Below the pieces are notes generated by a model. That model saw only the letters and a list, made by a program, of their open reading frames with translations. It did not search any database and had not been told where the DNA came from. 64,000 nt of DNA from Macrostomum lignano (taxonomy: Eukaryota). The stretch spans positions 124,001 through 188,000 of the forward strand of contig NIVC01000928.1 of NCBI GenBank assembly GCA_002269645.1, read 5' to 3'. Each line of letters begins with the position of its first letter. The first letter of the stretch is position 1. The translations under genes and the position numbers were made by a program. Below are positions 25,801-62,613 of this stretch, piece by piece.

Positions 25801-25962
25801 TTTCCGTTTCCTAATGGCGAGTCAAGCGGCGGAGCCTGGTGCGGCTCCTGCGGAATGCCGGACGCTTCGCGACGGTGCAGCAGGTGCAAGAAAGTCTACT
25901 ACTGCAACAGAAACTGCCAGCTGGAGCACTGGAAGCGGCACAAGAAGCACTGCACCGCTTGA
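22897..25962 (+). CDS. TPR + Sel1-like repeat + MYND zinc-finger protein (1021 aa, single coding exon)
   Basis: TPR block LKAEGNDFYK...ALCEINL...DAIELDP; about 7 Sel1 repeats (e.g. AENALGVAYRDGMAVDKDDKLAFKWFLKSARHG); further TPR-like helices; C-terminal CGSC..CSRCKKVYYCNRNCQLEHWKRHKKHC (MYND). An in-frame stop at 22888 supports the ATG. Confidence 0.92.
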   Translation: MPAHHEHTQNAKATANIQFAVSLLSESLRDILENSFNIKDRLDFNKSLEMLGDKVKEIFPDLESQKQRQLEQYLQRAKAITSRLSTQNFDFDRCEHDLECLLRLSTLLGFSECHKQIINFSGVIIEDWEKLKAEGNDFYKNRKWMEAMNCYSRAIKSTSNVAVLFSNRALCEINLRKFDLAREDAEDAIELDPSQVKFYRILSETLFKLRLYQQAADVCKAGLKISSTDETLLMRVRLCDELVLDSEQQSNADRSKVGQDPTVHKKLRDCQVESTSDISPDEVHPMDSAVLQSISELDKAHQILQSGRGDIGEEQKAFEIFESVAKQGSAQGLYNMAIMYKDGNAGLARDPAKHFQLCLQAAEQNPYLSAMDDVFLNIGVAEAENALGVAYRDGMAVDKDDKLAFKWFLKSARHGYASAMSNLGLAFYNGTGCERSPTSARWWLQKAADLGQSEAQLKLAGMLIEGEGGPADSEKAVELLKAAANQGLPGALEALQQQMRRGATKAKRMNSTRKIVEEKAAANDKEALFLLGMNYLQGEGGFEQDFELAESYLRKAFDRNHEKAAFVLGNLFLRLRRNKDSVYFLRHAAENGNEEAQWTLGFLLSIGHGCDRDAAEARIWMLRSKKQSKKCIDDLIEQSSQFVRVEAARGLSTKDGLSQLERIERLCTASLSNSMARDATKEVFELLRQETECELHPGTSSWCEMVNMLTTEKLMAKRVAEGSKTAQLYFIAHDLLDQMRWALKSKNPEAFRLYRLAARAWQPLMFDMDTWDELLAAATEAFEKNPRDADAYFAICQCHACKNMSNNKELVRMALTCTNLNPNVADYYVFLCNMYAFVEDGVGSLKAVERALELEWEPTWLLEKAKALVQKYINRQDRSIIIEAYKEFIAANEKDQRHIPEANYYLSYEYMEMKDEEMAREYYQRGLRAESPEVRLPCFEPVQDYRPKEIVEAMFKILDSSRSNPGMSFPFPNGESSGGAWCGSCGMPDASRRCSRCKKVYYCNRNCQLEHWKRHKKHCTA

Positions 25963-29007: not shown

Positions 29008-32000
29008 ATGCAGCAGGCCGTTGTGACCCGCACCTGCCGCCCCTGTGGCAGGCAGTTCACTGCTCAGACCGGGACATTTGAGCTGCAGGGCAAAAGTCCC
29101 GGGCAGCAGCAGCAGCAGCAGCAGCAAGAGAGTCAATCAGAGCAGAGTAGAACCCGAGGCCAGCTCAAGCCTCTCAGACTCGCCCTGGCAGACTGGAATG
29201 TGTTCCCTGAGACCACCGTGTTGGCACCTCAGCAGGCTGAGGGAGTTGTGTGCAACTGGCTGCAGACCACAGCTGCCCAGATGAAGCTGCTGGATGACGA
29301 ATCCAGACTCTACGGCAAGGTGATCTTCGATCCGCTGGGTGAGTCCTGCCGTGGGACCCTGGCTTGTGAGCCGCTGACATGAGTAGTGAGGGCTGAGTGA
29401 GGACTGGATAGTGAGGGCTGATTGTGGACTGGATAGTGAGGGCTGTGTGTGGACTGGATAGTGAGGGCTGATTGTGGACTGGATAGTGAGGGCTGATTGT
29501 GGACTGGACAGTGAGGGCTGAGTGTGGACTGGATAGTGAGGGCTGAGTGGACTGGATAGAGAAGGCTGATTGTGGACTGGATAGTGAGGGCTGTGTGTGG
29601 ACTGGATAGTGAGGGCTGAGTGGACTGGATAGAGAAGGCTGATTGTGGACTGGACAGTGAGGGCTGAGTGTGGACTGGATAGTGAGGGCTGAGTGGACTG
29701 GATAGAGAAGGCTGATTGTGGACTGGATAGTGAGGGCTGTGTGTGGACTGGATAGTGAGGGCTGAGTGGACTGGATAGAGAAGGCTGATTGTGGACTGGA
29801 TAGTGAGGGCTGAGTGTGGACTGGATAGTGAGGGCTGTGTGTGGACTGGATAGTGAAGGCTGAGTGTGGACTGGATAGTGAGGGCTGAGTGTGGACTGGA
29901 TAGTGAGGGCTGTGTGTGGACTGGATAGTGAGGGCTGAGTGAGGACTGGATAGTGAGGGCTGGGTGTGGACTGGATAGTGAGGGCTGAGTGTGGACTGGA
30001 TAGTGAGGGCTGAGTGTGGACTGGATAGTGTGGGCTGTCTGTGCAGTGTGGACTGGATAGTGTGGATCGGGTCTCTGACCTTCATATGTCCCTCCTCCCA
30101 AAGGTGAGCTGTACGACTTTGAGATCTCAACTCTGAGCCCGAAGATGCTCAGCCTGGGCTTCGGGAACTGGATGAGCACCCTGGCCAGTGGCGAGGTGCT
30201 GCTGGACATTGTTAACTGCCTCATCGACCACTGCCTGCCGGCCGCGGTTGGGAGAAATGAGGCTGGGAACATCTTCGAGGTGAGGGCTGTCTTGACAGGC
30301 TGCGACAGGTGGGGACACTGCCTGTGACAGCTGGGGACACGTGTAGGACAGGCTGCGACAGGTGGGACAATGCCTGTGACAGGTGGGGACACTGTCTGTG
30401 ACAGCTGGGGACACTGTCTGTGACAGGTAGGGACACTGTCTGTGACAGGTAGGGACACAGGTGGGGACACTGTCTGTGACAGGTATGGACACTGTCTGTG
30501 ACAGGTATGGACACTGTCTGTGACAGCTGGGGACACTGTCTGTGACAGGTAGGGACACTGTCTGTGACAGCTGGGGACATTGTCTGTGACAGGTAGGGAC
30601 ACTGCCTGTGACAGGTGGGGACACTGTCTGTGACAGGTGGGGACACAGGTGGGGACACTGTCTGTGAAAGGTGGGGACACAGGTGGATTTCAATGCTGTC
30701 AAGGCATTCTCAAGCATCCCAGAACGCCTCGAAATCCTGCAGATCATCACAGCCGAGCCGCTGAAGAAGGTCCGGTTGCTGGACGTCGCCCCCAACCAGC
30801 TGGCGGCCTGCATGTTTCTTGGAAACCACAACCGGCTGATTGACGATTTTCTGGACCCCCTGCTGGCCTCCGTGCGGGACATCGGGCTGCCCCCTCCAGG
30901 AGAGAAGCCGGAAACTGCGGGGAACATCCGGCAGGCCCTGCACCTCATTCGCCCCGTGGGACACAACCTGCTGCGGAGCTGCCACTCGACTAGGGTGAGA
31001 GTCAGATCGCAGATCCCAGATCGCAGATCCCAGATCGCAGATCCCAGATCGCAGATCCCAGATCGCAGATCCCAGATCGCAGATCCCAGATCGCAGATCC
31101 CAGATCGCAGATCCCAGATCGCAGATCCCAGATCGCAGATCCCAGATCGCAGATCCCAGATCGCAGATCCCAGATCGCAGATCCCAGATCGCAGATCCCA
31201 GATCGCAGATCCCAGATCGCAGATCCCAGATCGCAGATCCCAGATCGCAGATCCCAGATCGCAGATCCCAGATCGCAGATCCCAGATCGCAGATCCCAGA
31301 TCGCAGATCCCAGATCGCAGATCCCAGATCGCAGATCCCAGATCGCAGATCCCAGATCGCAGATCCCAGATCGCAGATCCCAGATCGCAGATCCCAGATC
31401 GCAGATCCCAGATCGCAGATCCCAGATCGCAGATCCCAGATCGCAGATCCCAGATCGCAGATCCCAGATCGCAGATCCCAGATCGCAGATCCCAGATCGC
31501 AGATCCCAGATCGCAGATCCCAGATCGCAGATCCCAGATCGCAGATCCCAGATCGCAGATCCCAGATCGCAGATCCCAGATCGCAGATCCCAGATCGCAG
31601 ATCCCAGATCGCAGATCCCAGATCGCAGATCCCAGATCGCAGATCCCAGATCGCAGATCCCAGATCGCAGATCCCAGATCGCAGATCCCAGATCGCAGAT
31701 CCCAGATCGCAGATCCCAGATCGCAGATCCCAGATCGCAGATCCCAGATCGCAGATCCCAGATCGCAGATCCCAGATCGCAGATCCCAGATCGCAGATCC
31801 CAGATCGCAGATCCCAGATCGCAGATCCCAGATCGCAGATCCCAGATCGCAGATCCCAGATCGCAGATCCCAGATCGCAGATCCCAGATCGCAGATCCCA
31901 GATCGCAGATCCCAGATCGCAGATCCCAGATCGCAGATCCCAGATCGCAGATCCCAGATCGCAGATCCCAGATCGCAGATCCCAGATCGCAGATCCCAGA

Positions 32001-33052
32001 TCGCAGATCCCAGATCGCAGATCCCAGATCGCAGATCCCAGATCGCAGATCCCAGATCGCAGATCCCAGATCGCAGATCCCAGATCGCAGATCCCAGATC
32101 GCAGATCCCAGATCGCAGATCCCAGATCGCAGATCCCAGATCGCAGATCCCAGATCGCAGATCCCAGATCGCAGATCCCAGATCGCAGATCCCAGATCGC
32201 AGATCCCAGATCGCAGATCCCAGATCGCAGATCCCAGATCGCAGATCCCAGATCGCAGATCCCAGATCGCAGATCCCAGATCGCAGATCCCAGATCGCAG
32301 ATCCCAGATCGCAGATCCCAGATCGCAGATCCCAGATCGCAGATCCCAGATCGCAGATCCCAGATCGCAGATCCCAGATCGCAGATCCCAGATCGCAGAT
32401 CCCAGATCGCAGATCCCAGATCGCAGATCCCAGATCGCAGATCCCAGATCGCAGATCCCAGATCGCAGATCCCAGATCGCAGATCCCAGATCGCAGATCC
32501 CAGATCGCAGATCCCAGATCGCAGATCCCAGATCGCAGATCCCAGATCGCAGATCCCAGATCGCAGATCCCAGATCGCAGATCCCAGATCGCAGATCCCA
32601 GATCGCAGATCCCAGATCGCAGATCCCAGATCGCAGATCCCAGATCGCAGATCCCAGATCGCAGATCCCAGATCGCAGATCCCAGATCGCAGATCCCAGA
32701 TCGCAGATCCCAGATCGCAGATCCCAGATCCCAGCGCACGCCTCTCCCACAGGAGTGGACCTGGAAGGCGCTGATGTTGCTGGTGCTCATCCTGATGGCG
32801 CTGTGCGGCAGCCTGACCGCAGAGCAGGAGCACCTGTTCAGCTGCCTCACCGGGGAGTTCGATGCCTCCCAGCTGGTTGTCCCGGAGCTGCAGCTCGCGC
32901 TGAGCGCCATCCAGCAGGCCGCCAAGGGGATCACCGTGGCGGAGCAGCCCTCGGTGCAGGAGCTGCGGTGGGCGCTGCCGTACAGGCGGGTGATGAAGCA
33001 GGGCCCCATCGAGTTCCAGAGCGTCCTGCTTCGGGACTTCGAGCTGGAGTGA
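29008..33052 (+). CDS. Uncharacterised 372-aa protein; exons 29008-29338, 30104-30279, 30683-30994, 32753-33052
   Basis: Four GC-rich non-repetitive blocks separated by tandem arrays join through GT-AG sites with matching phases (1, 0, 0) into one stop-free protein. No family recognised. Confidence 0.72.
29385..30065. repeat. 23-25-bp minisatellite (orphan gene intron 1)
   Basis: (GGACTGGATAGTGAGGGCTGAGTGT)n with variants. Confidence 0.93.
30297..30682. repeat. 22-bp minisatellite (orphan gene intron 2)
   Basis: (GGGACACTGTCTGTGACAGGTA/G)n. Confidence 0.9.
31004..32733. repeat. Near-perfect 14-bp satellite (orphan gene intron 3)
   Basis: (AGATCGCAGATCCC)n, about 123 copies with no visible variant unit until the last one. 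Confidence 0.98.
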
Positions 33053-33227
33053 CCGAGCTCACGGGTCCCGAGATCCCGAATCAAAGTTTTGATCCCAATG
33101 GCTCTGAATTGAGGAACTTGGTTCGATTCGAAATTCTGAAAATAAACTTAAAATATAAACACGATTCTGACTTGTCTTTGTCAAAGCGAATAGTTATTGA
33201 ATGTCAATGATCTTGATGATCTGCGGT

Positions 33228-33625
33228 TTCTAATATGGCGCCCCCAATTTCTAATATGGCACCCCCGATTTCTAAAATGGCGTCCTCCGCCAATTTCTAA
33301 TATGGCGCCACCGATTTCTAATATGGGGCTCCCCATTTCTGATATGGCGCCTCTCGATTTCTAATATGGCGCCTCCAACTTCTAATATGGCGCCCTCCCC
33401 CGATTTCTAATATGGCGCTCCCGATTTCTAATATGGCGCCCCCGATTTTTAAAATGGCGCCCTTCCCCAATTTCTAAAATGGCGTCCTCCGCCAATTTCT
33501 AAATGGCGCCTTCCCCAGATTTCTAATATGGCGTCCCCGATTTCTAATATGGCGTCTCCGATTTCTAATATGGCGCCTCCGATTTCTAATATGGCGTCCA
33601 CGATTTCTAATATGGCGCCCCCGAC
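33228..33625. repeat. ~21-bp degenerate tandem repeat
   Basis: Repeated (CC)GATTTCTAATATGGCGCC units, about 18 copies. Confidence 0.88.
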
Positions 33626-34201
33626 TATATGAAAGTTTTGAGTTTCTCGTGAAAACTTTTCAAAATTGAAAAACTTTTATTCTTCAAACGTAATCCGAGT
33701 TTTTGCAAAGAAATTTCCAGAATATTCTGCAGAGGCTGGGGCTTACGTTAGTGGAGTCTCGCAGTGGGTAACAAATACAGCGAGCCAATGCTTCATCAGC
33801 CAGATTGTCAGCTCATTTTGCTTTTGTCTTTCAAATCTGTCAAACTAGCCTGTAATTAACCTGTCACTATGAGCACCGCCTACTCGACAAAGCCGTTGTC
33901 AACTGTCTCGCAATTGCCCCCTGGCAATGAGGCGCCTATACTGTAAGATCGCCCACATTTTAAGTCGATTCGCATTGTTCAACCATTTTTCCTCCTGCAT
34001 TCCTCCTGCTCACTAAATTCCAGATGTAAAAATTTGTTTACGCAATCCGCATCCTTTATAGAAGCCACCCGGATATGCAGCGGATGTATTGTTATTATAA
34101 ATACGGACCGGTAAATCCGCCGTAGGTCTTTAAAACAGTCGATCTGACGCTCATAGTCTTGAAAATTTTCTGAGAAACCAGCGATTGTTTACACCGAGAC
34201 C

Positions 34202-37200
34202 ATGCAGCCACTGGTTCGGCTGACTGCCATTGGCGCACTGTTGGCAGTCTGTCTGGCTGTCACCTGCATCGGCAGCCCTGCTGGCACGATTGATGAAGAT
34301 GCCTATGCAGCTGAGGATAATTATGCCCGTGACCTGGAGGATCTGGACGAGGACAAACGGAGTTTAGCGTTCAAAGACAACGCTGACTATGGGCGAAAGC
34401 CTGAGCTGCAGTCTGGAGAGGAGGTGAGATGCACGTTTAATTATAGTTTAACTAAATTTATATTGTTGATGTCAAGGCATCTGAGCTCGTCCGTCAGAAT
34501 GAGTCCACAGACCCTCATCTGAGTCTGTCAGAATGAGTCCATAGACACTGATCCGAGTCTGTCAGAATGAGTCCATAGACACTCATCTGAGTCTGTCAGA
34601 ATGAGCCCATAGACACTGATCTGAGTAATGTCAGAATGAGTCCATAGGCACTGATCTGAGTCTGTCAGAATGAGCCCATAGACACTGGACTGAGTAATGT
34701 CAGAATGAGTCCATAGACACTGGACTGAGTCTGTCAGAATGAGTCCATAGACACTGGACTGAGTCTGTCAGAATGAGTCCATAGGCACTGATCTGAGTCT
34801 GTCAGAATGAGCCCATAGACACTGGACTGAGTAATGTCAGAATGAGTCCATAGACACTGGACTGAGTCTGTCAGAATGAGTCCATAGACACTGGACTGAG
34901 TCTGTCAGAATGAGTCCATAGACACTGATCTGAGTCTGTCAGAATGAGTCCATAGACACTGATCCGAGTCTGTCAGAATGAGTCCATAGACACTCATCTG
35001 AGTCTGTCAGAATGAGTCCATAGGCACTGATCCGAGTCTGTCAGAATGAGTCCATAGACACTCATCTGAGTCTGTCAGAATGAGTCCATAGACACTCATC
35101 TGAGTCTGTCAGAATGAGTCCATAGGCACTGATCCGAGTCTGTCAGAGTGAGTCCATAGACACTCATCTGAGTCTGTCAGAATGAGCCCATAGACACTGA
35201 TCTGAGTAATGTCAGAATGAGTCCATAGGCACTGATCTGAGTCTGTCAGAATGAGCCCATAGACACTGGACTGAGTAATGTCAGAATGAGTCCATAGACA
35301 CTGGACTGAGTCTGTCAGAATGAGTCCATAGACACTGGACTGAGTCTGTCAGAATGAGTCCATAGACACTGATCTGAGTCTGTCAGAATGAGTCCATAGA
35401 CACTGATCCGAGTCTGTCAGAATGAGTCCATAGACACTCATCTGAGTCTGTCAGAATGAGTCCATAGGCACTGATCCGAGTCTGTCAGAATGAGTCCATA
35501 GACACTCATCTGAGTCTGTCAGAATGAGTCCATAGACACTCATCTGAGTCTGTCAGAATGAGTCCATAGGCACTGATCCGAGTCTGTCAGAGTGAGTCCA
35601 TAGACACTCATCTGAGTCTGTCAGAATGAGTCCATAGGCACTGATCCGAGTCTGTCAGAATGAGTCCATAGACACTGATCTGAGTCTGTCAGAATGAGTC
35701 CATAGACACTCATCTGAGTCTGTCAGAATGAGTCCATAGACACTGATCTGAGTCTGTCAGAATGAGTCCATAGACACTGATCTGAGTCTGTCAGAATGAG
35801 TCCATAGACACTCATCTGAGTCTGTCAGGATGAGTCCATAGGCACTGATCTGAGTAATGTCAGAATGAGTCCATAGGCACTGATCTGAGTCTGTCAGAAT
35901 GAGCCCATAGACACTGGACTGAGTAATGTCAGAATGAGTCCATAGACACTGGACTGAGTCTGTCAGAATGAGTCCATAGACACTGGACTGAGTCTGTCAG
36001 AATGAGTCCATAGACACTGATCTGAGTCTGTCAGAATGAGCCCATAGACACTGGACTGAGTAATGTCAGAATGAGTCCATAGACACTGATCCGAGTCTGT
36101 CAGAATGAGTCCATAGACACTGGACTGAGTCTGTCAGAATGAGTCCATAGACACTGGACTGAGTCTGTCAGAATGAGTCCATAGACACTGGACTGAGTCT
36201 GTCAGAATGAGTCCATAGACACTGGACTGAGTCTGTCAGAATGAGCCCATAGACACTGATCTGAGTAATGTCAGAATGAGCCCATAGGCACTGATCTGAG
36301 TCTGTCAGGATGAGTCCATAGGCACTGATCTGAGTAATGTCAGAATGAGTCCATAGACACTGATCTGAGTCTGTCAGAATGAGTCCATAGACACTCATCT
36401 GAGTAATGTCAGAATGAGTCCATAGACACTGATCTGAGTCTGTCAGAATGAGTCCATAGGCACTGATCTGAGTCTGTCAGAATGAGCCCATAGGCACTGA
36501 TCCGAGTCTGTCAGAATGAGTCCATAGACACTGATCTGAGTCTGTCAGAATGAGTCCATAGACACTGATCCGAGTCTGTCAGAATGAGTCCATAGGCACT
36601 GATCCGAGTCTGTCAGAATGAGTCCATAGGCACTGATCTGAGTCTGTCAGAATGAGCCCATAGACACTCATCTGAGTCTGTCAGAATGAGCCTATAGACA
36701 CTGATCCGAGTCTGTCAGAATGAGTCCATAGACACTGATCTGAGTCTGTCAGAATGAGTCCATAGACACTGATCCGAGTCTGTCAGAATGAGTCCATAGA
36801 CACTCATCTGAGTCTGTCAGAATGAGCCCATAGACACTCATCTGAGTCTGTCAGAATGAGTCCATAGACACTGATCTGAGTCTGTCAGAATGAGTCCATA
36901 GACACTGATCTGAGTCTGTCAGAATGAGCCCATAGACACTCATCTGAGTCTGTCAGAATGAGTCCATAGACACTGATCCGAGTCTGTCAGAATGAGTCCA
37001 TAGACACTGATCTGAGTAATGTCAGAATGAGTCCATAGACACTGGACTGAGTCTGTCAGAATGAGTCCATAGACACTGGACTGAGTCTGTCAGAATGAGT
37101 CCATAGACACTGATCCGAGTCTGTCAGAATGAGTCCATAGACACTGATCCGAGTCTGTCAGAATGAGTCCATAGACACTGATCTGAGTCTGTCAGAATGA

Positions 37201-40200
37201 GTCCAAAGACACTGGACTGAGTCTGTCAGAATGAGTCCATAGACACTGGACTGAGTCTGTCAGAATGAGTCCATAGACACTGGACTGAGTCTGTCAGAAT
37301 GAGTCCATAGACACTGATCCGAGTCTGTCAGAATGAGTCCATAGACACTCATCTGAGTCTGTCAGAATGAGCCATAGACACTGATCTGAGTAATGTCAGA
37401 ATGAGTCCATAGGCACTGATCTGAGTCTGTCAGAATGAGCCCATAGACACTGGACTGAGTAATGTCAGAATGAGTCCATAGACACTGGACTGAGTCTGTC
37501 AGAATGAGTCCATAGACACTGGACTGAGTCTGTCAGAATGAGTCCATAGACACTGATCTGAGTCTGTCAGAATGAGTCCATAGACACTGATCCGAGTCTG
37601 TCAGAATGAGTCCATAGACACTCATCTGAGTCTGTCAGAATGAGTCCATAGGCACTGATCCGAGTCTGTCAGAATGAGTCCATAGACACTCATCTGAGTC
37701 TGTCAGAATGAGTCCATAGACACTCATCTGAGTCTGTCAGAATGAGTCCATAGGCACTGATCCGAGTCTGTCAGAGTGAGTCCATAGACACTGATCTGAG
37801 TAATGTCAGAATGAGTCCATAGGCACTGATCTGAGTCTGTCAGAATGAGCCCATAGACACTGGACTGAGTAATGTCAGAATGAGTCCATAGACACTGGAC
37901 TGAGTCTGTCAGAATGAGTCCATAGACACTGGACTGAGTCTGTCAGAATGAGTCCATAGACACTGATCTGAGTCTGTCAGAATGAGTCCATAGACACTGA
38001 TCCGAGTCTGTCAGAATGAGTCCATAGACACTCATCTGAGTCTGTCAGAATGAGTCCATAGGCACTGATCCGAGTCTGTCAGAATGAGTCCATAGACACT
38101 CATCTGAGTCTGTCAGAATGAGTCCATAGACACTCATCTGAGTCTGTCAGAATGAGTCCATAGGCACTGATCCGAGTCTGTCAGAGTGAGTCCATAGACA
38201 CTCATCTGAGTCTGTCAGAATGAGTCCATAGGCACTGATCCGAGTCTGTCAGAATGAGTCCATAGACACTGATCTGAGTCTGTCAGAATGAGTCCATAGA
38301 CACTCATCTGAGTCTGTCAGAATGAGTCCATAGACACTGATCTGAGTCTGTCAGAATGAGTCCATAGACACTGATCTGAGTCTGTCAGAATGAGTCCATA
38401 GACACTCATCTGAGTCTGTCAGGATGAGTCCATAGGCACTGATCTGAGTAATGTCAGAATGAGTCCATAGGCACTGATCTGAGTCTGTCAGAATGAGCCC
38501 ATAGACACTGGACTGAGTAATGTCAGAATGAGTCCATAGACACTCATCTGAGTCTGTCAGAATGAGTCCATAGACACTGGACTGAGTCTGTCAGAATGAG
38601 TCCATAGACACTGGACTGAGTCTGTCAGAATGAGCCCATAGACACTGGACTGAGTAATGTCAGAATGAGTCCATAGACACTGATCCGAGTCTGTCAGAAT
38701 GAGTCCATAGACACTCATCTGAGTCTGTCAGAATGAGTCCATAGGCACTGATCCGAGTCTGTCAGAATGAGTCCATAGACACTCATCTGAGTCTGTCAGA
38801 ATGAGTCCATAGACACTCATCTGAGTCTGTCAGAATGAGTCCATAGGCACTGATCCGAGTCTGTCAGAGTGAGTCCATAGACACTCATCTGAGTCTGTCA
38901 GAATGAGCCCATAGACACTGATCTGAGTAATGTCAGAATGAGTCCATAGGCACTGATCTGAGTCTGTCAGAATGAGCCCATAGACACTGGACTGAGTAAT
39001 GTCAGAATGAGTCCATAGACACTGGACTGAGTCTGTCAGAATGAGTCCATAGACACTGGACTGAGTCTGTCAGAATGAGTCCATAGACACTGATCTGAGT
39101 CTGTCAGAATGAGTCCATAGACACTGATCCGAGTCTGTCAGAATGAGTCCATAGACACTCATCTGAGTCTGTCAGAATGAGTCCATAGGCACTGATCCGA
39201 GTCTGTCAGAATGAGTCCATAGACACTCATCTGAGTCTGTCAGAATGAGTCCATAGACACTCATCTGAGTCTGTCAGAATGAGTCCATAGGCACTGATCC
39301 GAGTCTGTCAGAGTGAGTCCATAGACACTCATCTGAGTCTGTCAGAATGAGTCCATAGGCACTGATCCGAGTCTGTCAGAATGAGTCCATAGACACTCAT
39401 CTGAGTCTGTCAGAATGAGTCCATAGACACTGATCTGAGTCTGTCAGAATGAGTCCATAGACACTGATCTGAGTCTGTCAGAATGAGTCCATAGACACTC
39501 ATCTGAGTCTGTCAGATGAGTCCATAGGCACTGATCTGAGTAATGTCAGAATGAGTCCATAGGCACTGATCTGAGTCTGTCAGAATGAGCCATAGACACT
39601 GGACTGAGTAATGTCAGAATGAGTCCATAGACACTGGACTGAGTCTGTCAGAATGAGTCCATAGACACTGGACTGAGTCTGTCAGAATGAGTCCATAGAC
39701 ACTGATCTGAGTCTGTCAGAATGAGCCATAGACACTGGACTGAGTAATGTCAGAATGAGTCCATAGACACTGATCGAGTCTGTCAGAATGAGTCCATAGA
39801 CACTGGACTGAGTCTGTCAGAATGAGTCCATAGACACTGGACTGAGTCTGTCAGAATGAGTCCATAGACACTGGACTGAGTCTGTCAGAATGAGTCCATA
39901 GACACTGGACTGAGTCTGTCAGAATGAGCCCATAGACACTGATCTGAGTAATGTCAGAATGAGCCCATAGGCACTGATCTGAGTCTGTCAGATGAGTCCA
40001 TAGGCACTGATCTGAGTAATGTCAGAATGAGTCCATAGACACTCATCTGAGTCTGTCAGAATGAGTCCATAGACACTCATCTGAGTAATGTCAGAATGAG
40101 TCCATAGACACTGATCTGAGTCTGTCAGAATGAGTCCATAGGCACTGATCTGAGTCTGTCAGAATGAGCCCATAGGCACTGATCCGAGTCTGTCAGAATG

Positions 40201-43200
40201 AGTCCATAGACACTGATCTGAGTCTGTCAGAATGAGTCCATAGACACTGATCCGAGTCTGTCAGAATGAGTCCATAGGCACTGATCCGAGTCTGTCAGAA
40301 TGAGTCCATAGGCACTGATCTGAGTCTGTCAGAATGAGCCCATAGACACTCATCTGAGTCTGTCAGAATGAGCCTATAGACACTGATCCGAGTCTGTCAG
40401 AATGAGTCCATAGACACTGATCTGAGTCTGTCAGAATGAGCCCATAGACACTGATCTGAGTCTGTCAGAATGAGTCCATAGACACTCATCTGAGTCTGTC
40501 AGAATGAGCCCATAGACACTCATCTGAGTCTGTCAGAATGAGTCCATAGACACTGATCTGAGTCTGTCAGAATGAGTCCATAGACACTGATCTGAGTCTG
40601 TCAGAATGAGCCATAGACACTCATCTGAGTCTGTCAGAATGAGTCCATAGACACTGATCCGAGTCTGTCAGAATGAGTCCATAGACACTGATCTGAGTAA
40701 TGTCAGAATGAGTCCATAGACACTGGACTGAGTCTGTCAGAATGAGTCCATAGACACTGGACTGAGTCTGTCAGAATGAGTCCATAGACACTGATCCGAG
40801 TCTGTCAGAATGAGTCCATAGACACTGATCCGAGTCTGTCAGAATGAGTCCATAGACACTGATCTGAGTCTGTCAGAATGAGTCCAAAGACACTGGACTG
40901 AGTCTGTCAGAATGAGTCCATAGACACTGGACTGAGTCTGTCAGAATGAGTCCATAGACACTGGACTGAGTCTGTCAGAATGAGTCCATAGACACTGATC
41001 CGAGTCTGTCAGAATGAGTCCATAGACACTCATCTGAGTCTGTCAGAATGAGCCCATAGACACTGATCTGAGTAATGTCAGAATGAGTCCATAGGCACTG
41101 ATCTGAGTCTGTCAGAATGAGCCCATAGACACTGGACTGAGTAATGTCAGAATGAGTCCATAGACACTGGACTGAGTCTGTCAGAATGAGTCCATAGACA
41201 CTGGACTGAGTCTGTCAGAATGAGTCCATAGACACTGATCTGAGTCTGTCAGAATGAGTCCATAGACACTGATCCGAGTCTGTCAGAATGAGTCCATAGA
41301 CACTCATCTGAGTCTGTCAGAATGAGTCCATAGGCACTGATCCGAGTCTGTCAGAATGAGTCCATAGACACTCATCTGAGTCTGTCAGAATGAGTCCATA
41401 GACACTCATCTGAGTCTCTCAGAATGAGTCCATAGGCACTGATCCGAGTCTGTCAGAGTGAGTCCATAGACACTGATCTGAGTAATGTCAGAATGAGTCC
41501 ATAGGCACTGATCTGAGTCTGTCAGAATGAGCCCATAGACACTGGACTGAGTAATGTCAGAATGAGTCCATAGACACTGGACTGAGTCTGTCAGAATGAG
41601 TCCATAGACACTGGACTGAGTCTGTCAGAATGAGTCCATAGACACTGATCTGAGTCTGTCAGAATGAGTCCATAGACACTGATCCGAGTCTGTCAGAATG
41701 AGTCCATAGACACTCATCTGAGTCTGTCAGAATGAGTCCATAGGCACTGATCCGAGTCTGTCAGAATGAGTCCATAGACACTCATCTGAGTCTGTCAGAA
41801 TGAGTCCATAGACACTCATCTGAGTCTGTCAGAATGAGTCCATAGGCACTGATCCGAGTCTGTCAGAGTGAGTCCATAGACACTCATCTGAGTCTGTCAG
41901 AATGAGTCCATAGGCACTGATCCGAGTCTGTCAGAATGAGTCCATAGACACTGATCTGAGTCTGTCAGAATGAGTCCATAGACACTCATCTGAGTCTGTC
42001 AGAATGAGTCCATAGACACTGATCTGAGTCTGTCAGAATGAGTCCATAGACACTGATCTGAGTCTGTCAGAATGAGTCCATAGACACTCATCTGAGTCTG
42101 TCAGGATGAGTCCATAGGCACTGATCTGAGTAATGTCAGAATGAGTCCATAGGCACTGATCTGAGTCTGTCAGAATGAGCCCATAGACACTGGACTGAGT
42201 AATGTCAGAATGAGTCCATAGACACTCATCTGAGTCTGTCAGAATGAGTCCATAGACACTGGACTGAGTCTGTCAGAATGAGTCCATAGACACTGGACTG
42301 AGTCTGTCAGAATGAGCCCATAGACACTGGACTGAGTAATGTCAGAATGAGTCCATAGACACTGATCCGAGTCTGTCAGAATGAGTCCATAGACACTGGA
42401 CTGAGTCTGTCAGAATGAGTCCATAGACACTGGACTGAGTCTGTCAGAATGAGTCCATAGACACTGGACTGAGTCTGTCAGAATGAGTCCATAGACACTG
42501 GACTGAGTCTGTCAGAATGAGCCCATAGACACTGATCTGAGTAATGTCAGAATGAGCCCATAGGCACTGATCTGAGTCTGTCAGAATGAGCCCATAGACA
42601 CTGGACTGAGTAATGTCAGAATGAGTCCATAGACACTGATCTGAGTCTGTCAGAATGAGTCCATAGACACTCATCTGAGTAATGTCAGAATGAGTCCATA
42701 GACACTGATCTGAGTCTGTCAGAATGAGTCCATAGGCACTGATCTGAGTCTGTCAGAATGAGCCCATAGGCACTGATCCGAGTCTGTCAGAATGAGTCCA
42801 TAGACACTGATCTGAGTCTGTCAGAATGAGTCCATAGACACTGATCCGAGTCTGTCAGAATGAGTCCATAGGCACTGATCCGAGTCTGTCAGAATGAGTC
42901 CATAGGCACTGATCTGAGTCTGTCAGAATGAGCCCATAGACACTCATCTGAGTCTGTCAGAATGAGCCCATAGACACTGATCCGAGTCTGTCAGAATGAG
43001 TCCATAGACACTGATCTGAGTCTGTCAGAATGAGCCCATAGACACTGATCTGAGTCTGTCAGAATGAGTCCATAGACACTGATCTGAGTCTGTCAGAATG
43101 AGTCCATAGACACTCATCTGAGTCTGTCAGAATGAGTCCATAGACACTGATCTGAGTCTGTCAGAATGAGTCCATAGACACTCATCTGAGTCTGTCAGAA

Positions 43201-43744
43201 TGAGCCCATAGACACTCATCTGAGTCTGTCAGAATGAGTCCATAGACACTGATCCGAGTCTGTCAGAATGAGTCCATAGACACTGATCTGAGTAATGTCA
43301 GAATGAGTCCATAGACACTGGACTGAGTCTGTCAGAATGAGTCCATAGACACTGGACTGAGTCTGTCAGAATGAGTCCATAGACACTGACTGAGTCTGTC
43401 AGAATGAGTCCATAGACACTGATCTGAGTCTGTCAGAATGAGTCCAAAGACACTGATCTGAGTCTGTCAGAATGAGTCCATAGGCACTGATCTGAGTCTG
43501 TCAGAATGAGCCCATAGGCACTGATCTGAGTAATGTCAGAATGAGTCCATAGGCACTGATCTGAGTCTGTCAGGATGAGTCCATAGCACACTGATTTCAA
43601 TACTTGCAAAGTAGTTTTGTTCATATATTTATGTTTCAAACATTTAAAATTTTACAGCCAATTCAAAAGTCTCCATCTGCCAAGTGGTTCATCAGACACC
43701 ACATCTCTTCTCGAGCTTCGCGGCGCGGTGGCTGGGGTCGTTAA
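34202..43744 (+). CDS. Candidate neuropeptide/prohormone precursor, 102 aa; exons 34202-34423 and 43658-43744
   Basis: Signal-peptide-like N-terminus (LTAIGALLAVCLAVTCIG), acidic spacer and KR-SLAFKDNADY-G-RK. Phase-0 donor GAG/GTGAGA at 34424 and acceptor TTTACAG at 43657 give PIQKSPSAKWFIRHHISSRASRRGGW-GR-stop. Confidence 0.68.
34478..43595. repeat. 34-bp satellite array (~268 copies, ~9.1 kb)
   Basis: (GTCTGTCAGAATGAGTCCATAGACACTGATCTGA)n with recurring variant units. Confidence 0.98.
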
Positions 43745-44134
43745 AAATACTGAATCTTTCCCATTATGTATGCATGTACACGTATGTGCGTCGTAAAGGT
43801 GCCCATTAAGACGATCAGGAACTTTGAAAACTTTGGACTTACATGCATATATCTCACAGGAAACGTGCATGTCATGTAGACGAACATTTATATGCACTGT
43901 TGTTTTAGTAGCGAGCCATCTGCTATTACCTGATCTCACCTATAATCGTGTTATCCTCCTTAATCTTAACTGCAACGAAAACTATATCAATTGTTGTTAA
44001 AGTGTTTTGTCACCTTCGAGGATTAAAACTGCTGGTCTGTCGTTTTTACTATTGTATGAAAGAAACTTAATAATCGGACTTTTGCTTGGATTTCCTTTCA
44101 AAACCATGCAGTCTTTCGTTGTTTCTCACTCACT

Positions 44135-44438
<304 letters not shown>

Positions 44439-45659
44439 GACATTTTTTTAAATATATATAGTATGATACTTTGATCGAGAAATACAAGTTTCTCTCGCGG
44501 TGTCGCGTTTAATTACTAGAAAAGACAGAAAGGCACAGACAGACAGACAGACATGTAAAAGATACATGTACATCTTGTAATAAATGTAGCAATTAAGTAA
44601 TGCAATGAGTATTAGGACTAAAACAATTCCCTGAGATTTGTTGCTCATACTTGCGGCTAACATGCAACTAACTTCAAATTCGGGAACTTGGAATGACAAA
44701 CTTTGCAATCTAAATGATACGGAGGATGTTCCCAGTCTTCAATTATTGTTCTTGAAAAAAATTATGGACATATGTTCGGTCTTTTCTTTCAAGCTGTCGT
44801 ACAATATTTGCCATTAAAAATAAAAGTCTAAGGCCTACAGAAATGTGACCACATTGTCATAAATTGTCGACTTATCGTTGATCGATCGTTATATCACAAG
44901 TTGTATTTTTGCAACAATTTAAAAACCCACTTTTCTCATTTAAAAACCCAATTTAAAAAAACCCATTATTTGACACTGTACGAATGTTTAAATGTCATTA
45001 CTTACTTAGATTAGGCCTTATTCTCATAAGCACTGCAATTTGTTACTTAATTCGCATGACCTAGAATAAGTTTTGACGTGTTGGATTTTATTTTATTATA
45101 TTGTAGCTAAGACTAGCCGACTCGGCCCTAGGCTTGGCTATGTTTGCTGATTTCTAGCTATGCTGCCATGGACATGGTATATTGTTGGGCTTATGGGCTT
45201 AGGGGCTTAGGTTCAGGGCCGATGTGACGATGTCTTTTCGCCGATGTGACCTGCACCCAGGGCTATCTAACTGATTTGTCTAGGCCTATGCCATTGCTGC
45301 AGCACTTGGTTTTCTAATTTTTAGTCAGGTGTAATACTAATTAGACCTAGGCCCTATTTATTTATCCAATTTATTTAGGGTCAACTTTTCTCTTGTCTTA
45401 TAAGTTATTACATGCCTAGCCAAAAACTGATTATGCATCGTTGTCTAAGTTTAAAAGTTTTTTATTTAAAACAAATTTAAAAGTATTTTTATTTTGTTAG
45501 GCCCACCCTAAATCAATTGTTTCTTTTTATTATAGCCTAGTTAGGGGCTAGGGCCTTTAATGTCTTGGCTAGACCCTAGCTTCCTAGACACTGTCATCTT
45601 ATATTTTTGTAGACCTAATCTACTTTGAAGTAGATCTTGCCAATTTGGCTTAGATAAAA

Positions 45660-48449: not shown

Positions 48450-51400
48450 ATGGCCACCGGATCAGCTTCCGCTCAACAATTTTACAATGGCAGCGCCAGC
48501 AATAATTCTTATCTGACTTCTACACTGGAAGATCTCATGTCAGACAGCTTGGACGAGATGGCGCCCTCAACGATGTCGGCTGGCTTGCCGTCTGGAGGTT
48601 CCGGACAGCCGGGCGCCAAAGCTGTTGAACTGCTGGACCAGCTCAGATCCTGTATGACTGACCTGTCTGATGTGCGAGGCATCTTCAGAGCTGCGGGTGA
48701 GACCGGTGAACATATTTATCAATCATGTCAGCCTTACTTGCCACCTTCCCAGTTGATTGAGATTCCGTTTTAGGCTCCCAGAATACTTTCTATTGGGAAG
48801 ATTGTGCAGAATTTTTAAGGCGCCAATGCGCCTGTGTCCAAGTTGGACTGTCGGTAGCTGTGCCTGTCCACCTGTCCATCTGCCGTCCACCTGTCTTATC
48901 TATCTGTCTGTCCACCTGTCCATCTGCCGTCCACCTGTCTTATCTATCTGTATGTCCACCTGTCCATCTGCCTGTCCACCTGTCTCATCTGTCTGTCCAC
49001 CTGTCTCATCTGTCTGTCTACCTGTCTAACCTATGTCTGTCCACTGTCTCATCTGTCTGTCTACCTGTCCATCTGCCTGTCCTCCTGTCTTGTTTATCTG
49101 TCTGATCACCTGTCTTGTCCATCTGTCTGTCTACCTGTCTTGTCCATCTGTCTGTCTACCTGTCTTGTCCACCTGTCTAGTCCATCTGTCCACCCATCTT
49201 GTTCATCTGTCCACCTGTCTTGTCCACCTGTCCACCTATCTTGTCCATCCTGTTCACCTGTCTTGTCCATCTGCCTGACCACCTATAAGAGCGCACAATG
49301 ACAGTATCTCAGCCTAGAAATATCCCAGACTCAAACTTGCCCCTAAATCCTCAGGCGCTGAGAACGCCAGGTTCGTGCGCCAGCTGGCTCACGAGCTGCC
49401 GCCGAGTTCGCCGGTGCCCACCGGCACTGCTGCGGCGCCTTCGTCGACTTCAACCGCGAACGGCGTCGGCCAGTCGGACTTGAAGCGCCGAGTGGCCGAG
49501 CTGGAGTCCGAGAATGCCAGCCTGAGAGCCGAGTTGGCGACTGTCAGGCTGCAGCTCGACCAGCTGCTCACTAGAAGTCCTAGGCAGTACTCCGGCTTGG
49601 CCCCTGTCAAGGAGGGCGGCGATGCAGCGACCGCGGCATCCGCTCAGAGCTCCGTGCTGGTTGGCATTGCCGCGCCTGAGGCCACTTCGACAGCTAAGAA
49701 ACCCACGGCTCTGGTTAATGCCATGCCGGCTGCCCCAGCGGCTTCTAACACTGGTGCGTGTGGCTTAGCATGCGTTTGTACTTTAGTCAGTCAAGTCGCA
49801 GACAGGGCTTTTGATGCCAGCAGTTACATCTTCCAATTTTCTATCAGAGTTTCTCACTGAGAGTTTCCCACTGAGAGTTTCCCATTGAGAGTTTCCCATT
49901 GAGAGTTTCCCATTGAGAGTTTCCCTCGGAGAGTTTTCCACTGAGAGTTTCCCATTGAGAGTTTCCCATTGAGAGTTTCCCATTGAGAGTTTCCCTCTGA
50001 GAGTTTCCCATTGAGAGTTTCCCACTGTTAGTTTCCCACTGAGAGTTTCCCACTGAGAGTTTCCCACTGAAAGTTTCCCACAGAGAGTTTCCCACTGTTA
50101 GTTTCCCATTGAGAGTTTCCCATTGAGAGTTTCCCATTGAGAGTTTCCCACTGAGAGTTTTCCACTGAGAGTTTCCCATTGAGAGTTTCCCATTGAGAGT
50201 TTCCCATTGAGAGTTTCCCACTGAGAGTTTCCCATTGAGAGTTTCCCATTGAGAGTTTCCCATTGAGAGTTTCCCATTGAGAGTTTCCCTCTGAAAGTTT
50301 CCCATTGAGAGTTTCCCACTGTTAGTTTCCCACTGAGAGTTTCCCACTGAGAGTTTCCCACTGAGAGTTTCCCATTGAGAGTTTCCCATTGGCATTGAGA
50401 GTTTCCCTCTGAGAGTTTCCCATTGAGAGTTTCTCACTGAGAGTTTCCCACTGAGAGTTTCCCACTGAGAGTTTCCCACTGAGAGTTTCCCATTGAGAGT
50501 TTCCCAATGAGAGTTTCCCTCGGAGAGTTTCCCACTGAGAGTTTTCCACTGAGAGTTTCCCACTGAGAGTTTCCCATTGAGAGTTTCCCATTGAGAGTTT
50601 CCCACTGAGAGTTTCCCATTGAGAGTTTCCCACTGTTAGTTTCCCATTGAGAGTTTCCCACTGTTAGTTTCCCATTGAGAGTTTCCCATTGAGAGTTTCC
50701 CACTGAGAGTTTCCCATTGAGAGTTTCCCACTGAGAGTTTCCCTTTGAGAGTTTCCCACTGAGAGTTTCCCTCTGAAAGTTTCCCATTGAGAGTTTCCCA
50801 CTGAGAGTTTGCCATTGAGAGTTTCCCATTGAGAGTTTCCCACTGAGAGTTTCCCTTTGAGAGTTTCCCTCTGAGAGTTTCCCATTGAGAGTTTCTCACT
50901 GAGAGTTTTCCACTGTGAGAGTTTCCCACTGTGAATTTCCTATTGAGAGTGGAAATTATTTTTCATGTTTCTCCCAACCACCCCCCGCCGAGCAGACTCA
51001 TCATCAACTCTGTCAACGCCTCGACCTCAGCGGCACAATACCGCAGGCGCTGCCGCTCCGGCGCCACCGACTGCCGATCCCGCCGAGGCCGCCATCGTCA
51101 GCAGTGTCGCCGACACGGCCGCAATGGAGGCGGAGGCTCGCCGCCAGCAGATGATGCTGCGGCCGCTGCCAGTGTCAACCAAGGACTCCGGCGGCTCCTC
51201 CGGCAGGAGCGGCTTCCGCAAGCTGGTGGCCTCCATGCGCTGGAAGAAGAGCCGCGGCAGCGCTAATCTTCAACGGGGCGGCAACTTCCGGTCGACAATT
51301 GGCGGCGGCGGCGGCGGAGCTTCCGGTGGCGGCGCGGCTGGTTCGTCGTCCTCCTCGACGCTGCCCTCGCCGCCTCGCCTTCTGTCGGCTCCGCTCACTC

Positions 51401-52847
51401 CGTCTGGCGCCGCCTTCGCGCACTGGGACTCGCGCCGGCTGGCTAGATGGTTCACCGACCTCCGGCTGGACATGTACGTCACCGCCGTGGTGTCTGATGG
51501 GTGGCGTGGTGCCCGACTGCTGGCCAGCAGCGACAGGGAGCTGGAGCGGGGCCTGCAGCTGCGACACCCGCTGCACCTGCGGAAGCTGCGCCTGGCCATC
51601 GAGCTGGAGACCAGCGGCGGCCGGCTGGACGACTATCTGCGGCCGGACTTCAATGTGGCCAGATGGCTGGACGATTTGGGACTGCGGCAGCACACCGACG
51701 CCTTCGCTGCCGCGGCTGCCGACCCGCTGCTGTTGGACAATCTGCGACTGGCCGACCTGTCGCACCTGCGCATTGTCAGCCTGCTGCACGCGCACAGCCT
51801 GAGGCGCGGGGTGCAGGCAATGCGCCTGGTGGACTGGCGCCTGGACTCGCTGGTTCGGCGGGCTGGGACCAGCGCCGATCTGCCCAGGTGGACTAGCCAT
51901 CAGGTTTGTACTTTTATTGGGAGGCTGGTGTATGTAGATTTGCTTCTGGAGAATGTAGCCTCAAATTTCCTGTGTTTTTAAAGAAAGATTGTAGCTTCGA
52001 ATTCTATATTTCTAAGAAAACTTCCAGTCTTTCTAGGAAAGCTGGTTTCTAAGAAAGCTGCGTACGGCTGTTCAGTTTAAGAACTTGGGGGGTCGCCACA
52101 CACACCCTCAATTAACCCCAGCTCATGCTGGCACCCATTTTACAGCTGAGTGAACTGAAGCAATGCAGAGTTGAGTGTCTCTTGCTCAAGGACACAAAAT
52201 TGTGTTCCGAGTGGGTCCAGAATCGAACCCCTGACCTTTCAGTCGCGAGTCTGACCGCTCTAACCACTAGGCTGCAACCCCTCCTGGCGATTTTTTTCTA
52301 AGAATGCTATTGCCCTTTAAATCCTATATTTCTAGGAAAGAGTGTCCTCAATAAAAATATTTCTAAGAAAACCTGGTACTCTTTAATCCTCACAAAATCC
52401 CACGTTATCCCTCAAACGCGGCAGGTGATGGAGTGGCTTCGCCAGGCGGACCTGGCCGAGTACGCGGTGAACTTGCGCGGCTCCGGTGTACACGGCGCCC
52501 TCATGGCGCTGGAGCCGCGGTTCACCTGCGACCTGCTGGCGGCCCTGCTGTCCATCCCGGTCGAGAAGTCGCTGCTCCGGCGCCACCTGCTGTCCAACTT
52601 TGTCGAGTTGGTCGGCGCCGACACGCACGCGGCAAAGATGCGCGCCCCGAACCCGCTGACCCTGGCAGGGAAAGTGAAGCTCAAGAAGCGGATTGGCCTG
52701 TTCTCTTCTAGTAGCACCGGCTCTGCCGCTGGCAGCAGCAGCAGCGAGACCTCGCCCGATGCGCTGCTGTGTCCGAGAACTTCGGATTGTTTGGATCAGC
52801 TGCTGAAAATGAGCACTCCGGCTCCGCCTAGGCTGACTCACCTGTGA
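48450..52847 (+). CDS. PPFIBP: Liprin-beta-like protein (three SAM domains), ~658 aa; exons 48450-48696, 49355-49753, 50996-51903, 52425-52847
   Basis: SAM1 FAHWDSRRLARWF..HLRKLRLA, SAM2 VARWLDDLGLRQH and SAM3 WTSHQ/VMEWLRQADLAEYAVNLRGSGVHGALMALEPRF...LLRRHL, which is characteristic of liprin-beta. Short coiled coil (LKRRVAELESENASLRAELATVRLQLDQL). Phases 1, 1, 0 are consistent. Confidence 0.88.
48860..49285. repeat. Degenerate CTGTC/CCAC low-complexity repeat (liprin intron 1)
   Basis: Repeated CTGTCCACCTGTC / CTGTCTGTC motifs. Confidence 0.8.
49845..50950. repeat. 14-bp minisatellite (liprin intron 2)
   Basis: (GAGAGTTTCCCATT/CT)n, about 78 copies. Confidence 0.95.
52087..52282 (-). mobile_element. 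tRNA-derived SINE, second copy (liprin intron 3)
   Basis: The reverse complement matches 13683-13880, including the A box, B box GGTTCGATTC and the GTGTCCTTGAGCAAGAGACAC core. Confidence 0.85.
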
Positions 52848-60200: not shown

Positions 60201-60784
60201 ACAGAGATGGGACTAAGAAAGACAGAGATGGGACTAAGAGAGACAGAGATGGGACTAAGAGAGACAGAGATGGGACTAAGAGAGACAGAGATGGGACTAA
60301 GAGAGAGACAGATGGGACTAAGAGAGACAGAGATGGGACTAAGAGAGAGACAGAGATGGGACTAAGAGACACAGAGATGGGACTAAGAGAGAGACAGATG
60401 GGACTAAGAGAGAGACAGAGATGGGACTAAGAGACACAGAGATGGGACTAAGAGAGAGACAGAGATGGGACTAAGAGAGAGACAGAGATGGGACTAAGAG
60501 AGAGACATATATGGGACTAAGAGAGAGACAGAGATGGGACTAAGAGAGACAGAGATGGGACTAAGAGAGACAGAGATGGGACTAAGAGATAGACAGAGAT
60601 GGGACTAAGAGAGAGACGGAGATGGGAGTAAGAGAGACAGAGATGGGACTAAGAGAGACAGAGATGGGACTAAGAGAGAGACAGAGATGGGACCAAGGAT
60701 TAGTTCCTCTGAACCTCCAATTGCAGAGAGGCCACAGCAGACAGCGCCAGTGCAGCAAAGCGCAAGCACTTGGACCTGCCTTGA
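54229..60784 (+). CDS. NUSAP1: NuSAP1-like (nucleolar and spindle-associated) protein; first exon from 54229, conserved late exon 59470-59629, likely last exon 60727-60784; middle exons unresolved
   Basis: N-terminal SAP-like LSYAELRRWAKHFGVKGRRKAFKLRDSL, central PNFADIHARN..ESLADYQARK and C-terminal KFDLQSSLSRPLTWVPHRGPLKP. These match the three conserved NuSAP blocks as I recall them from human NUSAP1 (LKYSDLQNLAK.., PNFKKLHE.., [22 protein letters not shown]). Confidence 0.82.
54636..55190 (+). repeat. 21-bp (7-codon) repeat, in frame within the NuSAP-like ORF
   Basis: (GCTGACAAGATTCAGAAATCA)n encoding ADKIQKS / TDKIELT, about 26 copies. Confidence 0.9.
57000..59238. repeat. Purine-rich 21-23-bp minisatellite (NuSAP intron)
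   Basis: (GATGTAGAAGGAAGGGAGAGA[GA])n. Confidence 0.95.
59665..60690. repeat. 21-23-bp minisatellite (NuSAP last intron)
   Basis: (GAGACAGAGATGGGACTAAGA[GA])n. Confidence 0.95.
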
Positions 60785-61364
60785 GCCCTGCTGGCCCAGG
60801 CGTTGGTATTCCGCAATTACATTGCATCAGTCTCTGTGCATGATAGACTGGTTTATTGCGCAACTGATACTGAAAACTACGCAGGTGGTGTCTGTTGTGC
60901 ATCTTAGTTTCCTTTTGTATCATTTAGTTCGTTATAATTTTATAATAACTAACGTTTTTTATTGCGTTGCTTTTTAAGCCGGCATTTTCTGTTGACATAA
61001 TAACTATCAATGCAGCTCTGGTTTAATTCTGTATTGCATTGACTGTCTGGTTTTGTTGTTTGCTGCTGCAGGTGTTTTTTAAAAATATTTTTATTAGTTA
61101 TTATTCATTGGTGCTCCCACATTTTTTATAAGTTTTCTATTTGCTTAGCTTACAATATACTTTATAGTGCAATGCAGTGATAAACTCTTCACTTTCATAA
61201 TTTAAATTTAAAATTATGCTAGTAACAAGGCTCATTGTGTACTACAGCACAGTGCTAATCCAAACCTTATTCAACTGAACTTTTAATTTTGTTTTAATGC
61301 TTTTAGATTACAGAATCTTATCAAAAAATTACAGAACAGAAATTATTGTCTGGCGATGATGTAG

Positions 61365-62310: not shown

Positions 62311-62613
62311 CAAGAAAAGCGTGACCAGCAGGAGCGGAACGAATCTCATTGGCTAAGAGCTGCACAGCCAATGGGAAGGCCGCCCACGTAATTGACGGCG
62401 TTGCTACTTATTTTTGACAAAGTCAAGCAATGTGGGGTTGAACCAGTTCAAAGAGAAGTCTGTCCTGCACTGCAACACAGGAGCGGCTATTTCTAAGAAT
62501 CGCCTAACAGTGGGATAATTATCCCCACATCAAATGCCAGTGGATCTGATAGTGCCTGGGCGAACTTCTATCGCCAAATAAGCTATCTCTGCTAGTTCAA
62601 GTATATTAAAAGC

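Follow-up and report, generated by a model that had tools for sequence, protein, structure and literature searches.

Does the 64,000-nucleotide stretch of Macrostomum lignano contig NIVC01000928.1 analysed here (hereafter the window; all positions refer to it) contain an unannotated gene for a secreted peptide precursor, and if so, which exons make it up? In the initial annotation, an exon at 34202-34423 was joined across a 9.2-kb satellite intron to an exon at 43658-43744, giving a 102-amino-acid (aa) precursor that releases the peptide SLAFKDNADY-amide and a C-terminal GGW-amide. We retained the first exon, replaced the second, and favour an unannotated two-exon gene located 3' of the orphan gene Mlig009799g6, in which 34202-34423 is followed by 44462-44512. 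Its predicted product is a secreted, acidic propeptide of 90 aa from which SLAFKDNADY-amide could be released, a reading to which we assign a probability of about 0.5. It rests on sequence features, codon statistics, comparison of paralogues and database gene models; where transcription begins, whether the ATG is used, and secretion, processing or signalling of the product are inferred.

Sequence features and coding potential of the first exon

The translation of 34202-34423 is MQPLVRLTAIGALLAVCLAVTCIGSPAGTIDEDAYAAEDNYARDLEDLDEDKRSLAFKDNADYGRKPELQSGEE, and GTGAGA follows directly. The elements originally described in this exon were all present, namely the leader, the acidic spacer and the in-frame sequence KR-SLAFKDNADY-G-RK, a basic-flanked peptide with a C-terminal Gly, and their layout fits a secretory propeptide (Table 1). 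Leaders were assessed with a crude heuristic for n-, h- and c-regions, applied to all 187 ATG-initiated open reading frames (ORFs) in the window that reach 40 aa, and only two of them passed. In the proposed exon the heuristic recognised R6, a 17-residue hydrophobic core and a CIG/S cleavage site; database gene models place a splice acceptor within this same leader. The other passing ORF (44448-44708, minus strand, start 44663) is AT-rich, overlaps the 3' end of the proposed gene in antisense and was taken as a chance occurrence. In 200 third-order Markov simulations, based on 40 kb of non-satellite sequence from the window, signal-like ORFs arose at 0.47 per sequence, and a signal-like ORF that also carried the motif [KR][KR]…G[KR][KR] arose once, equating to an expectation of 0.005 per sequence.

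Coding potential was scored as frame-specific codon log-odds, trained on 7.8 kb of coding sequence from the window, with its own off-frame and antisense codons as a reference that controls for GC content; the segments scored were kept out of the training set. The segment 34277-34423 scored +21.8 in the proposed frame and 0.8 and -39.1 in the other forward frames (expected values, coding 12.9±8.7, off-frame -18.9±8.0). The leader (34202-34273) scored +2.1 in frame and -10.3 and -4.1 in the other frames (coding 6.3±5.5, off-frame -9.0±5.1), a score reached by only 3.4% of scoring windows across the 577 bp of unique sequence that precede the ATG. The donor at 34423 agreed with the consensus at 7 of the 9 positions scored, the same as three annotated donors of Mlig009799g6, and it fits the GT[GA]AG motif of the species. 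Upstream, no ATG lies between TATAAAT (34096) and 34202, and an in-frame TGA (34160-34162) is found 14 codons before the start; TATAAAT occurs 44 times on the plus strand of the 64-kb window, so that as promoter evidence it is weak and post hoc. By its codon usage, donor and leader, 34202-34423 appears to be truly coding and to end at a functional splice donor.

The exon is also present at two paralogous loci. Five genomic copies of Mlig009799 were compared (the window copy, L005, together with L001, L002, L003 and L004), and the window, L001 and L003 share the same context, i.e. an ankyrin-repeat kinase gene, a TPR-MYND gene, Mlig009799 and the region studied here. The paralogues are 96-100% identical (exons and flanks 97-100%), which is too little divergence for a test of selection. 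The ORF, donor, terminal-exon acceptor, stop and AATAAA were intact in all three copies. In L001, the leader differs by P3T, A15T and one synonymous change, and in L003 the remainder of the exon differs by two synonymous changes, L48M and K66R. The last of these converts GRK to GRR and keeps the dibasic site, in a comparison confined to near-identical paralogues.

Choice of the terminal exon

The exon that partners 34202-34423 was examined through database gene models, codon usage, conservation and polyadenylation signals. The 102-aa query matched one database protein, P0001 (UniParc UPI0007A17233, 164 aa), at 100% over residues 26-74 only. When aligned to the window by tblastn, P0001 fell into three blocks (32753-33048, 34276-34423 and 44462-44509, then TAA), with its residues 149-164 corresponding exactly to 44462-44509 and ending at the TAA. 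P0001 is the only database gene model that crosses the intron, and it joins 34423 to 44462; it is an automated gene model and not a verified transcript. No database gene model uses 43658-43744, which P0001 skips. Codon usage gave the same order: 44462-44509 scored +3.6 in frame, the best of the three frames (others -8.6 and -7.5; coding 4.2±4.2, off-frame -6.0±4.0), and 43658-43741 scored -12.0 in its proposed frame (others -6.2 and -7.0; coding 7.4±6.0, off-frame -10.6±5.6), the worst of the three forward frames and 3.2 standard deviations under the coding expectation. L001 and L003 carry 44462-44512 without a single difference, and an AATAAA lies after it, with a 3' untranslated region probably reaching ~44600, and the closest poly(A) signal after the stop at 43744 is an ATTAAA 278 nt downstream.

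The 102-aa precursor has some features in its favour. Its acceptor, ttttacag/CC at 43657/43658, is the first good one past the satellite, is of the species-preferred CAG type and fits CAG and [TC]TNCAG better than the TAG at 44461. The exon is phase-compatible and ends in RR-GGW-G-R-stop, and across 43596-43767 the copies hardly differ, the one change being synonymous. However, there are 106 AG dinucleotides in 43596-44700, many of which open short ORFs, and an appealing short-ORF acceptor is therefore unsurprising. A 102-aa product would also lie above the usual 100-aa ORF cut-off (assumed, the TransDecoder default), yet it is unannotated in three copies. Together with the codon score, the skipping of the exon by P0001 and the distant ATTAAA, this makes the 102-aa precursor very improbable. 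The sequence features originally described were thus all present, and they exceeded chance for exon 1 and not for exon 2, given the 106 AG sites and the score of -12.0. The 34423/43658 junction was not supported, as the sole model spanning the intron leads elsewhere and 43658-43741 is non-coding by codon usage; splicing of exon 1 to another site had been named beforehand as grounds for refutation, and this is what was found, in an automated model and not a verified transcript. Nor was the GGW-amide supported: the GGWGR stretch scores as non-coding and is skipped by P0001. On balance, 44462-44512 is clearly favoured as the partner exon, and 43658-43744, with its GGW-amide, is most likely intron sequence.

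A proposed intron of variable length filled by satellite

With 44462-44512 as the terminal exon, the intron is 10,038 bp long in the window and is mostly occupied by a 34-bp satellite (Table 1). At the paralogous loci the satellite is much shorter, ~555 bp in L001 (15092-15646) and ~160 bp in L003 (about 14761-14919), and this reduces the same intron to 1,400 bp and 994 bp, respectively. The 9.1-kb satellite is therefore specific to the window locus, and the 9.2-kb satellite intron of the initial annotation holds for this copy alone. Within the array, kb-scale internal duplications that are 98.8-100% identical were found at lags of 2,594, 3,682, 3,721 and 6,276 bp, a pattern that suggests amplification of whole blocks in the recent past, unless it arose during assembly.

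The M. lignano genome is more than half repetitive; simple and tandem repeats make up 15%, and duplicated blocks that are almost identical are common (PMC5730564), which accounts for the 55 tandem-repeat entries in the window. Each intron of Mlig009799g6 likewise carries its own unrelated array (25-bp, 29384-30037; 22-bp, 30304-30686; 14-bp, 124 copies, 31003-32734), and a 21-bp array follows the gene (33227-33624). Several reading frames stay open through the 14-bp array, which gives rise to spurious ORFs of 582-985 aa.

Relationship with the upstream orphan gene Mlig009799

Mlig009799g6 lies directly upstream on the same strand, with its stop codon (TGA) at 33050-33052 and an AATAAA at 33141. 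Contig sequence of 24,045 bp around this gene (assembly GCA_002269645.1, Mlig_3_7) matched 19008-43052 of the window at 100% identity, and adding 124,000 to a window position gives the contig position. GenBank annotation of M. lignano is transcript-based, and trans-splicing and poly(A) reads define its gene boundaries (PMC5730564). The transcript-based copies g2, g3 and g6, as well as one UniProt model, give a 352-354-aa protein ending in …DFELE followed by the stop, and the annotation of g2, g3 and g6 ends at the position equivalent to 33052. No Pfam domain was found in Mlig009799, and a protein search with the spliced gene gave matches in M. lignano only. An exhaustive HMMER search with P0002, a member of this neighbouring family, against 1.84 billion representative proteins returned M. 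lignano proteins only, and a single-sequence AlphaFold2 prediction of P0002 was unusable (pLDDT 40).

Two of the five copies, L002 and L004, are flanked by an EF-hand gene on one side and a PPDK-like gene on the other. These possess exons 1-4, a further 178 bp and part of the 21-bp satellite, whereas 33625-44600 is missing entirely; the four-exon Mlig009799 is therefore self-contained, and these copies (g5 and g1) are complete without the exon studied here. The g5 copy (L002, NIVC01000928.1 229557-251901, reversed) shares its contig with the window and has the opposite orientation, and L004 corresponds to g1. The duplicated block of the g5/g1 type runs from ~28798 to the 21-bp satellite, i.e. 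it comprises the four-exon gene alone.

This bears on a second explanation, in which 34276-34423 and 44462-44512 are alternative 3' exons of Mlig009799, encoding an isoform of 417-437 aa with an acidic tail, and the apparent signal peptide is intronic and lacks an in-frame stop by coincidence. The alignment of P0001 coincides exactly with 32753-33048, 34276-34423 and 44462-44512, and the split codon GA/C at 33048/34276 reproduces its Asp. A sibling model, P0004, also enters the exon at 34276, and the acceptor there (ggcag/C) carries the CAG motif of the species behind a tract that is 60% pyrimidine. The corresponding donor, GGA/gtgacc at 33048, agrees with the consensus at only 4 of 9 positions, does not fit GT[GA]AG and coincides in part with the TGA annotated as the stop of Mlig009799g6. 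The sibling ML2 models are demonstrably faulty, P0004-P0006 being frameshifted or fused to the neighbouring EF-hand or transporter genes. Given this weak, stop-overlapping donor and the faulty siblings, the junction of exon 4 with 34276 in P0001 was judged a probable chimeric prediction, although a minor isoform produced by read-through may exist. Every transcript-based copy ends at FELE and the stop, g1 and g5 are without the downstream exons, and a long isoform would leave as coincidence the in-frame ATG in ACC context, the signal-like leader with its coding-like codons and the TATA box. We consider such an isoform unlikely.

Trans-splicing of the spliced leader (SL) onto 34276 was also considered and rejected: the terminal AUG of the SL would be out of frame, with a stop after five codons.

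The proposed 90-aa propeptide and its weighing

In the favoured two-exon gene, transcription would start at ~34125, near the TATA-like box, and translation at the ACCATG at 34202. Exon 1 would end at the strong donor at 34423, and the 10-kb intron, inflated by the 34-bp satellite and a CAGA microsatellite, would be spliced out to join exon 2 (44462-44512), which is followed by AATAAA. The predicted product is a 90-aa pre-propeptide in which MQPLVRLTAIGALLAVCLAVTCIG would be removed from the following 66 residues. Prohormones are generally processed by signal peptidase, by PC1/2-type convertases at dibasic sites, by carboxypeptidase E and by PAM acting on a C-terminal Gly. Following these rules, the pre-propeptide would enter the secretory pathway, and cuts at KR and RK with amidation at Gly would give SLAFKDNADY-NH2 and a 24-residue C-terminal peptide. 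Sulfation of Tyr is conceivable in the EDAY, EDNY and ADY contexts. Small acidic secreted proteins are numerous in flatworms, and even if the product is secreted, SLAFKDNADY-amide as the processed product, rather than a protein of this type, falls somewhat short of an even chance. The fullest version of this scheme is a Macrostomum-specific prohormone gene that makes the amidated (possibly Tyr-sulfated) decapeptide and the 24-residue peptide, whose single intron lengthened from ~1 kb to 10 kb in one copy when the 34-bp satellite recently expanded, and whose exon is perhaps now and then spliced to the orphan gene upstream as a 3' exon; taken whole, it is doubtful.

Several observations weigh against the 90-aa gene. 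The TATA box, the Kozak context and the missing upstream ATGs were all noticed post hoc. The paralogue substitutions number only seven (3 synonymous, 4 non-synonymous) and provide no real test of selection. No leader-bearing protein was found in databases with the 102-aa and 90-aa queries, in word-index searches that are lossy (P0004 was missed with the 102-aa query, and P0001 with the 90-aa query), and no gene is annotated here in the three copies covered by the transcript-based annotation. Both models that hold the exon, P0001 and P0004, begin it at 34276, within the leader. The acceptor at 44461 is TAG and not the preferred CAG, and if P0001 is purely ab initio, its exon choice and the codon test are not independent. 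A contig look-up returned no contig record for the unspliced 106-aa ORF or for P0001, and Pfam scans of the 102-aa and 437-aa models and an Rfam scan of the window gave no match.

A further explanation is that there is no functional gene and that a chance or decayed ORF, unexpressed, was taken up by a composition-driven ab initio prediction. The absence of homologues, both for the neighbour among 1.84 billion representatives and for the ORF in the lossy indexed searches, is in keeping with this, as is the lack of any entry in the transcript-based set. At 0.005 per window, the 764-Mb genome would be expected to hold ~60 ORFs of this type by chance, so that dozens of look-alikes may exist. However, the codon score of 34277-34423 lies ~5 standard deviations above the off-frame expectation, the ORF, donor, 44462 acceptor, stop and AATAAA are intact in three copies, and the leader, the start context, the donor and the terminal exon fit together as one gene. 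On this evidence the absence of a gene is rather unlikely, and the unannotated 90-aa propeptide gene remains the reading we prefer.

Comparison with known peptide families

The proposed precursor resembles the npp/spp precursors of flatworms (Schmidtea, Schistosoma and Macrostomum) in its small size, signal-like leader, acidic spacer and short peptide flanked by KR and G-RK, features that were reportedly set out for npp/spp by McVeigh and colleagues in 2009 and Collins and colleagues in 2010. It is also lineage-restricted in the same way, with no homologue detected in the indexed searches. It differs in carrying a single peptide copy and in a predicted -DY-amide end that fits none of the families found. 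Literature searches for DYamide or GGWamide/GWamide peptides found nothing, and searches for M. lignano neuropeptides and Mlig009799, including the supplements of two M. lignano papers, found no catalogue entry.

Precursors of APGWamide and RGWamide, found in molluscs and annelids, contain several copies of xGW-G-KR/RR within coding exons. Only the hypothetical …GGW-G-R resembles such an xGW-Gly-basic unit, and here a single GGWGR occurs, in a stretch (43658-43744) that is non-coding by codon usage; repeats of this unit within coding exons were not found. The likeness rests wholly on the rejected exon 43658-43744. Sulfakinins and CCK are defined by a C-terminal G[HM]MRF-amide. The sequence …NADYG shares with them a Tyr after Asp in an acidic context with Gly next, where Tyr sulfation is conceivable, but here the Gly lies directly before RK with no …MRF, and the DYG[HM]MRF-amide core is absent. 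As for the Mlig009799 family (g1-g6), it adjoins the exon on the same strand and the ML2 models P0001 and P0004 join the two, whereas its transcript-based coding sequence ends at 33052, two copies are without downstream exons and the joining donor is weak. The architecture is of the npp type, and no family can be assigned.

Table 1 Positions of the proposed gene, its predicted peptide elements and adjoining features in the window.
Feature	Position	Strand	Details
Candidate core promoter TATAAAT	34096-34102	+	106 bp 5' of the ATG
Proposed first coding exon	34202-34423	+	74 codons; ACCATG start; phase-0 donor GAG/GTGAGA
Signal-peptide-like leader	34202-34273	+	Likely cleavage CIG/SP; acidic spacer next
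KR	34355-34360	+	Convertase-type dibasic site
SLAFKDNADY	34361-34390	+	Between KR and Gly
Gly	34391-34393	+	Amide-donor position
RK	34394-34399	+	Dibasic site after Gly
Exon according to the old ML2 models P0001 and P0004	34276-34423	+	Acceptor ggcag/C at 34275/34276; donor 33048
Intron of the proposed gene	34424-44461	+	10,038 bp
34-bp satellite	34489-43595	+	267 tandem copies, 9.1 kb
Exon 2 of the initial annotation	43658-43744	+	PIQKSPSAKWFIRHHISSRASRRGGWGR followed by stop; 87-bp phase-0 ORF; judged intronic
(CAGA)n microsatellite	44135-44442	+	Inside the intron, besides unique sequence including 43658-43744
Proposed terminal coding exon	44462-44512	+	16 residues and TAA; acceptor atatatag/T
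Poly(A) signal AATAAA	44579-44584	+	67 nt past the TAA of the terminal exon
BOX15_Mlig009799g6	29008-33052	+	P0008, PAA74699.1, 352 aa; exons 29008-29338, 30104-30279, 30743-30994, 32753-33052

Other features of the window

The remainder of the window contains further genes, a retroelement and satellites. The interior of a Ty3/Gypsy-type long terminal repeat retrotransposon occupies 1909-6384 (plus strand), with long open frames that include a gag-like ORF, an aspartyl protease and reverse transcriptase (2558-4237), and RNase H and integrase (4234-6384). Exons of a class-I aminoacyl-tRNA synthetase of the Trp/Tyr type follow at 8837-11583 (plus strand), with Pfam tRNA-synt_1b on 11002-11583; they are split by 60 copies of a 22-bp satellite (9479-10807), and a 26-bp satellite lies after them (11620-12740). 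On the minus strand, 16502-19482 holds an ankyrin-repeat protein kinase gene with the Pkinase and Ank domains on separate ORFs; its paralogous loci are annotated as 694-709 aa. An intronless ORF of 1021 aa (22897-25962, plus strand) combines TPR and Sel1 repeats with a MYND zinc finger at its C-terminus. At the L003 counterpart of this TPR-MYND ORF a 1017-aa gene is annotated, and none is listed in the window or in L001. As the gene is listed in L003 only, GenBank annotation is incomplete per copy.

Downstream of the proposed gene, a GC-rich ORF with a SAM domain (50965-52847, plus strand), probably part of a multi-exon gene, is preceded on its 5' side by 78 copies of a 14-bp satellite (49846-50950). 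The end of the window (56000-64000) carries satellites that are purine-rich on the plus strand, with 100 copies of a 23-bp unit (57002-59236) and 21-bp arrays at 59684-60697 and 62896-63997, with GC skew of up to 0.74 and AT skew of up to 0.53.

Implications

Two cautions follow from this locus. The attractive 'G-R-stop' exon found by eye after the satellite is probably not the real partner of the first exon, and older automated models fused that first exon to the neighbouring gene. Genes of two exons that encode fewer than 100 aa and are split by satellite-filled introns can escape transcript-based annotation. Near-identical copies differ tenfold in the length of their intron, which offers a natural test of whether large satellite introns affect splicing or expression. 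If expressed, the 90-aa model would represent a lineage-specific secreted peptide, and maybe an amidated signal, in a transgenic flatworm model whose peptides are poorly catalogued.

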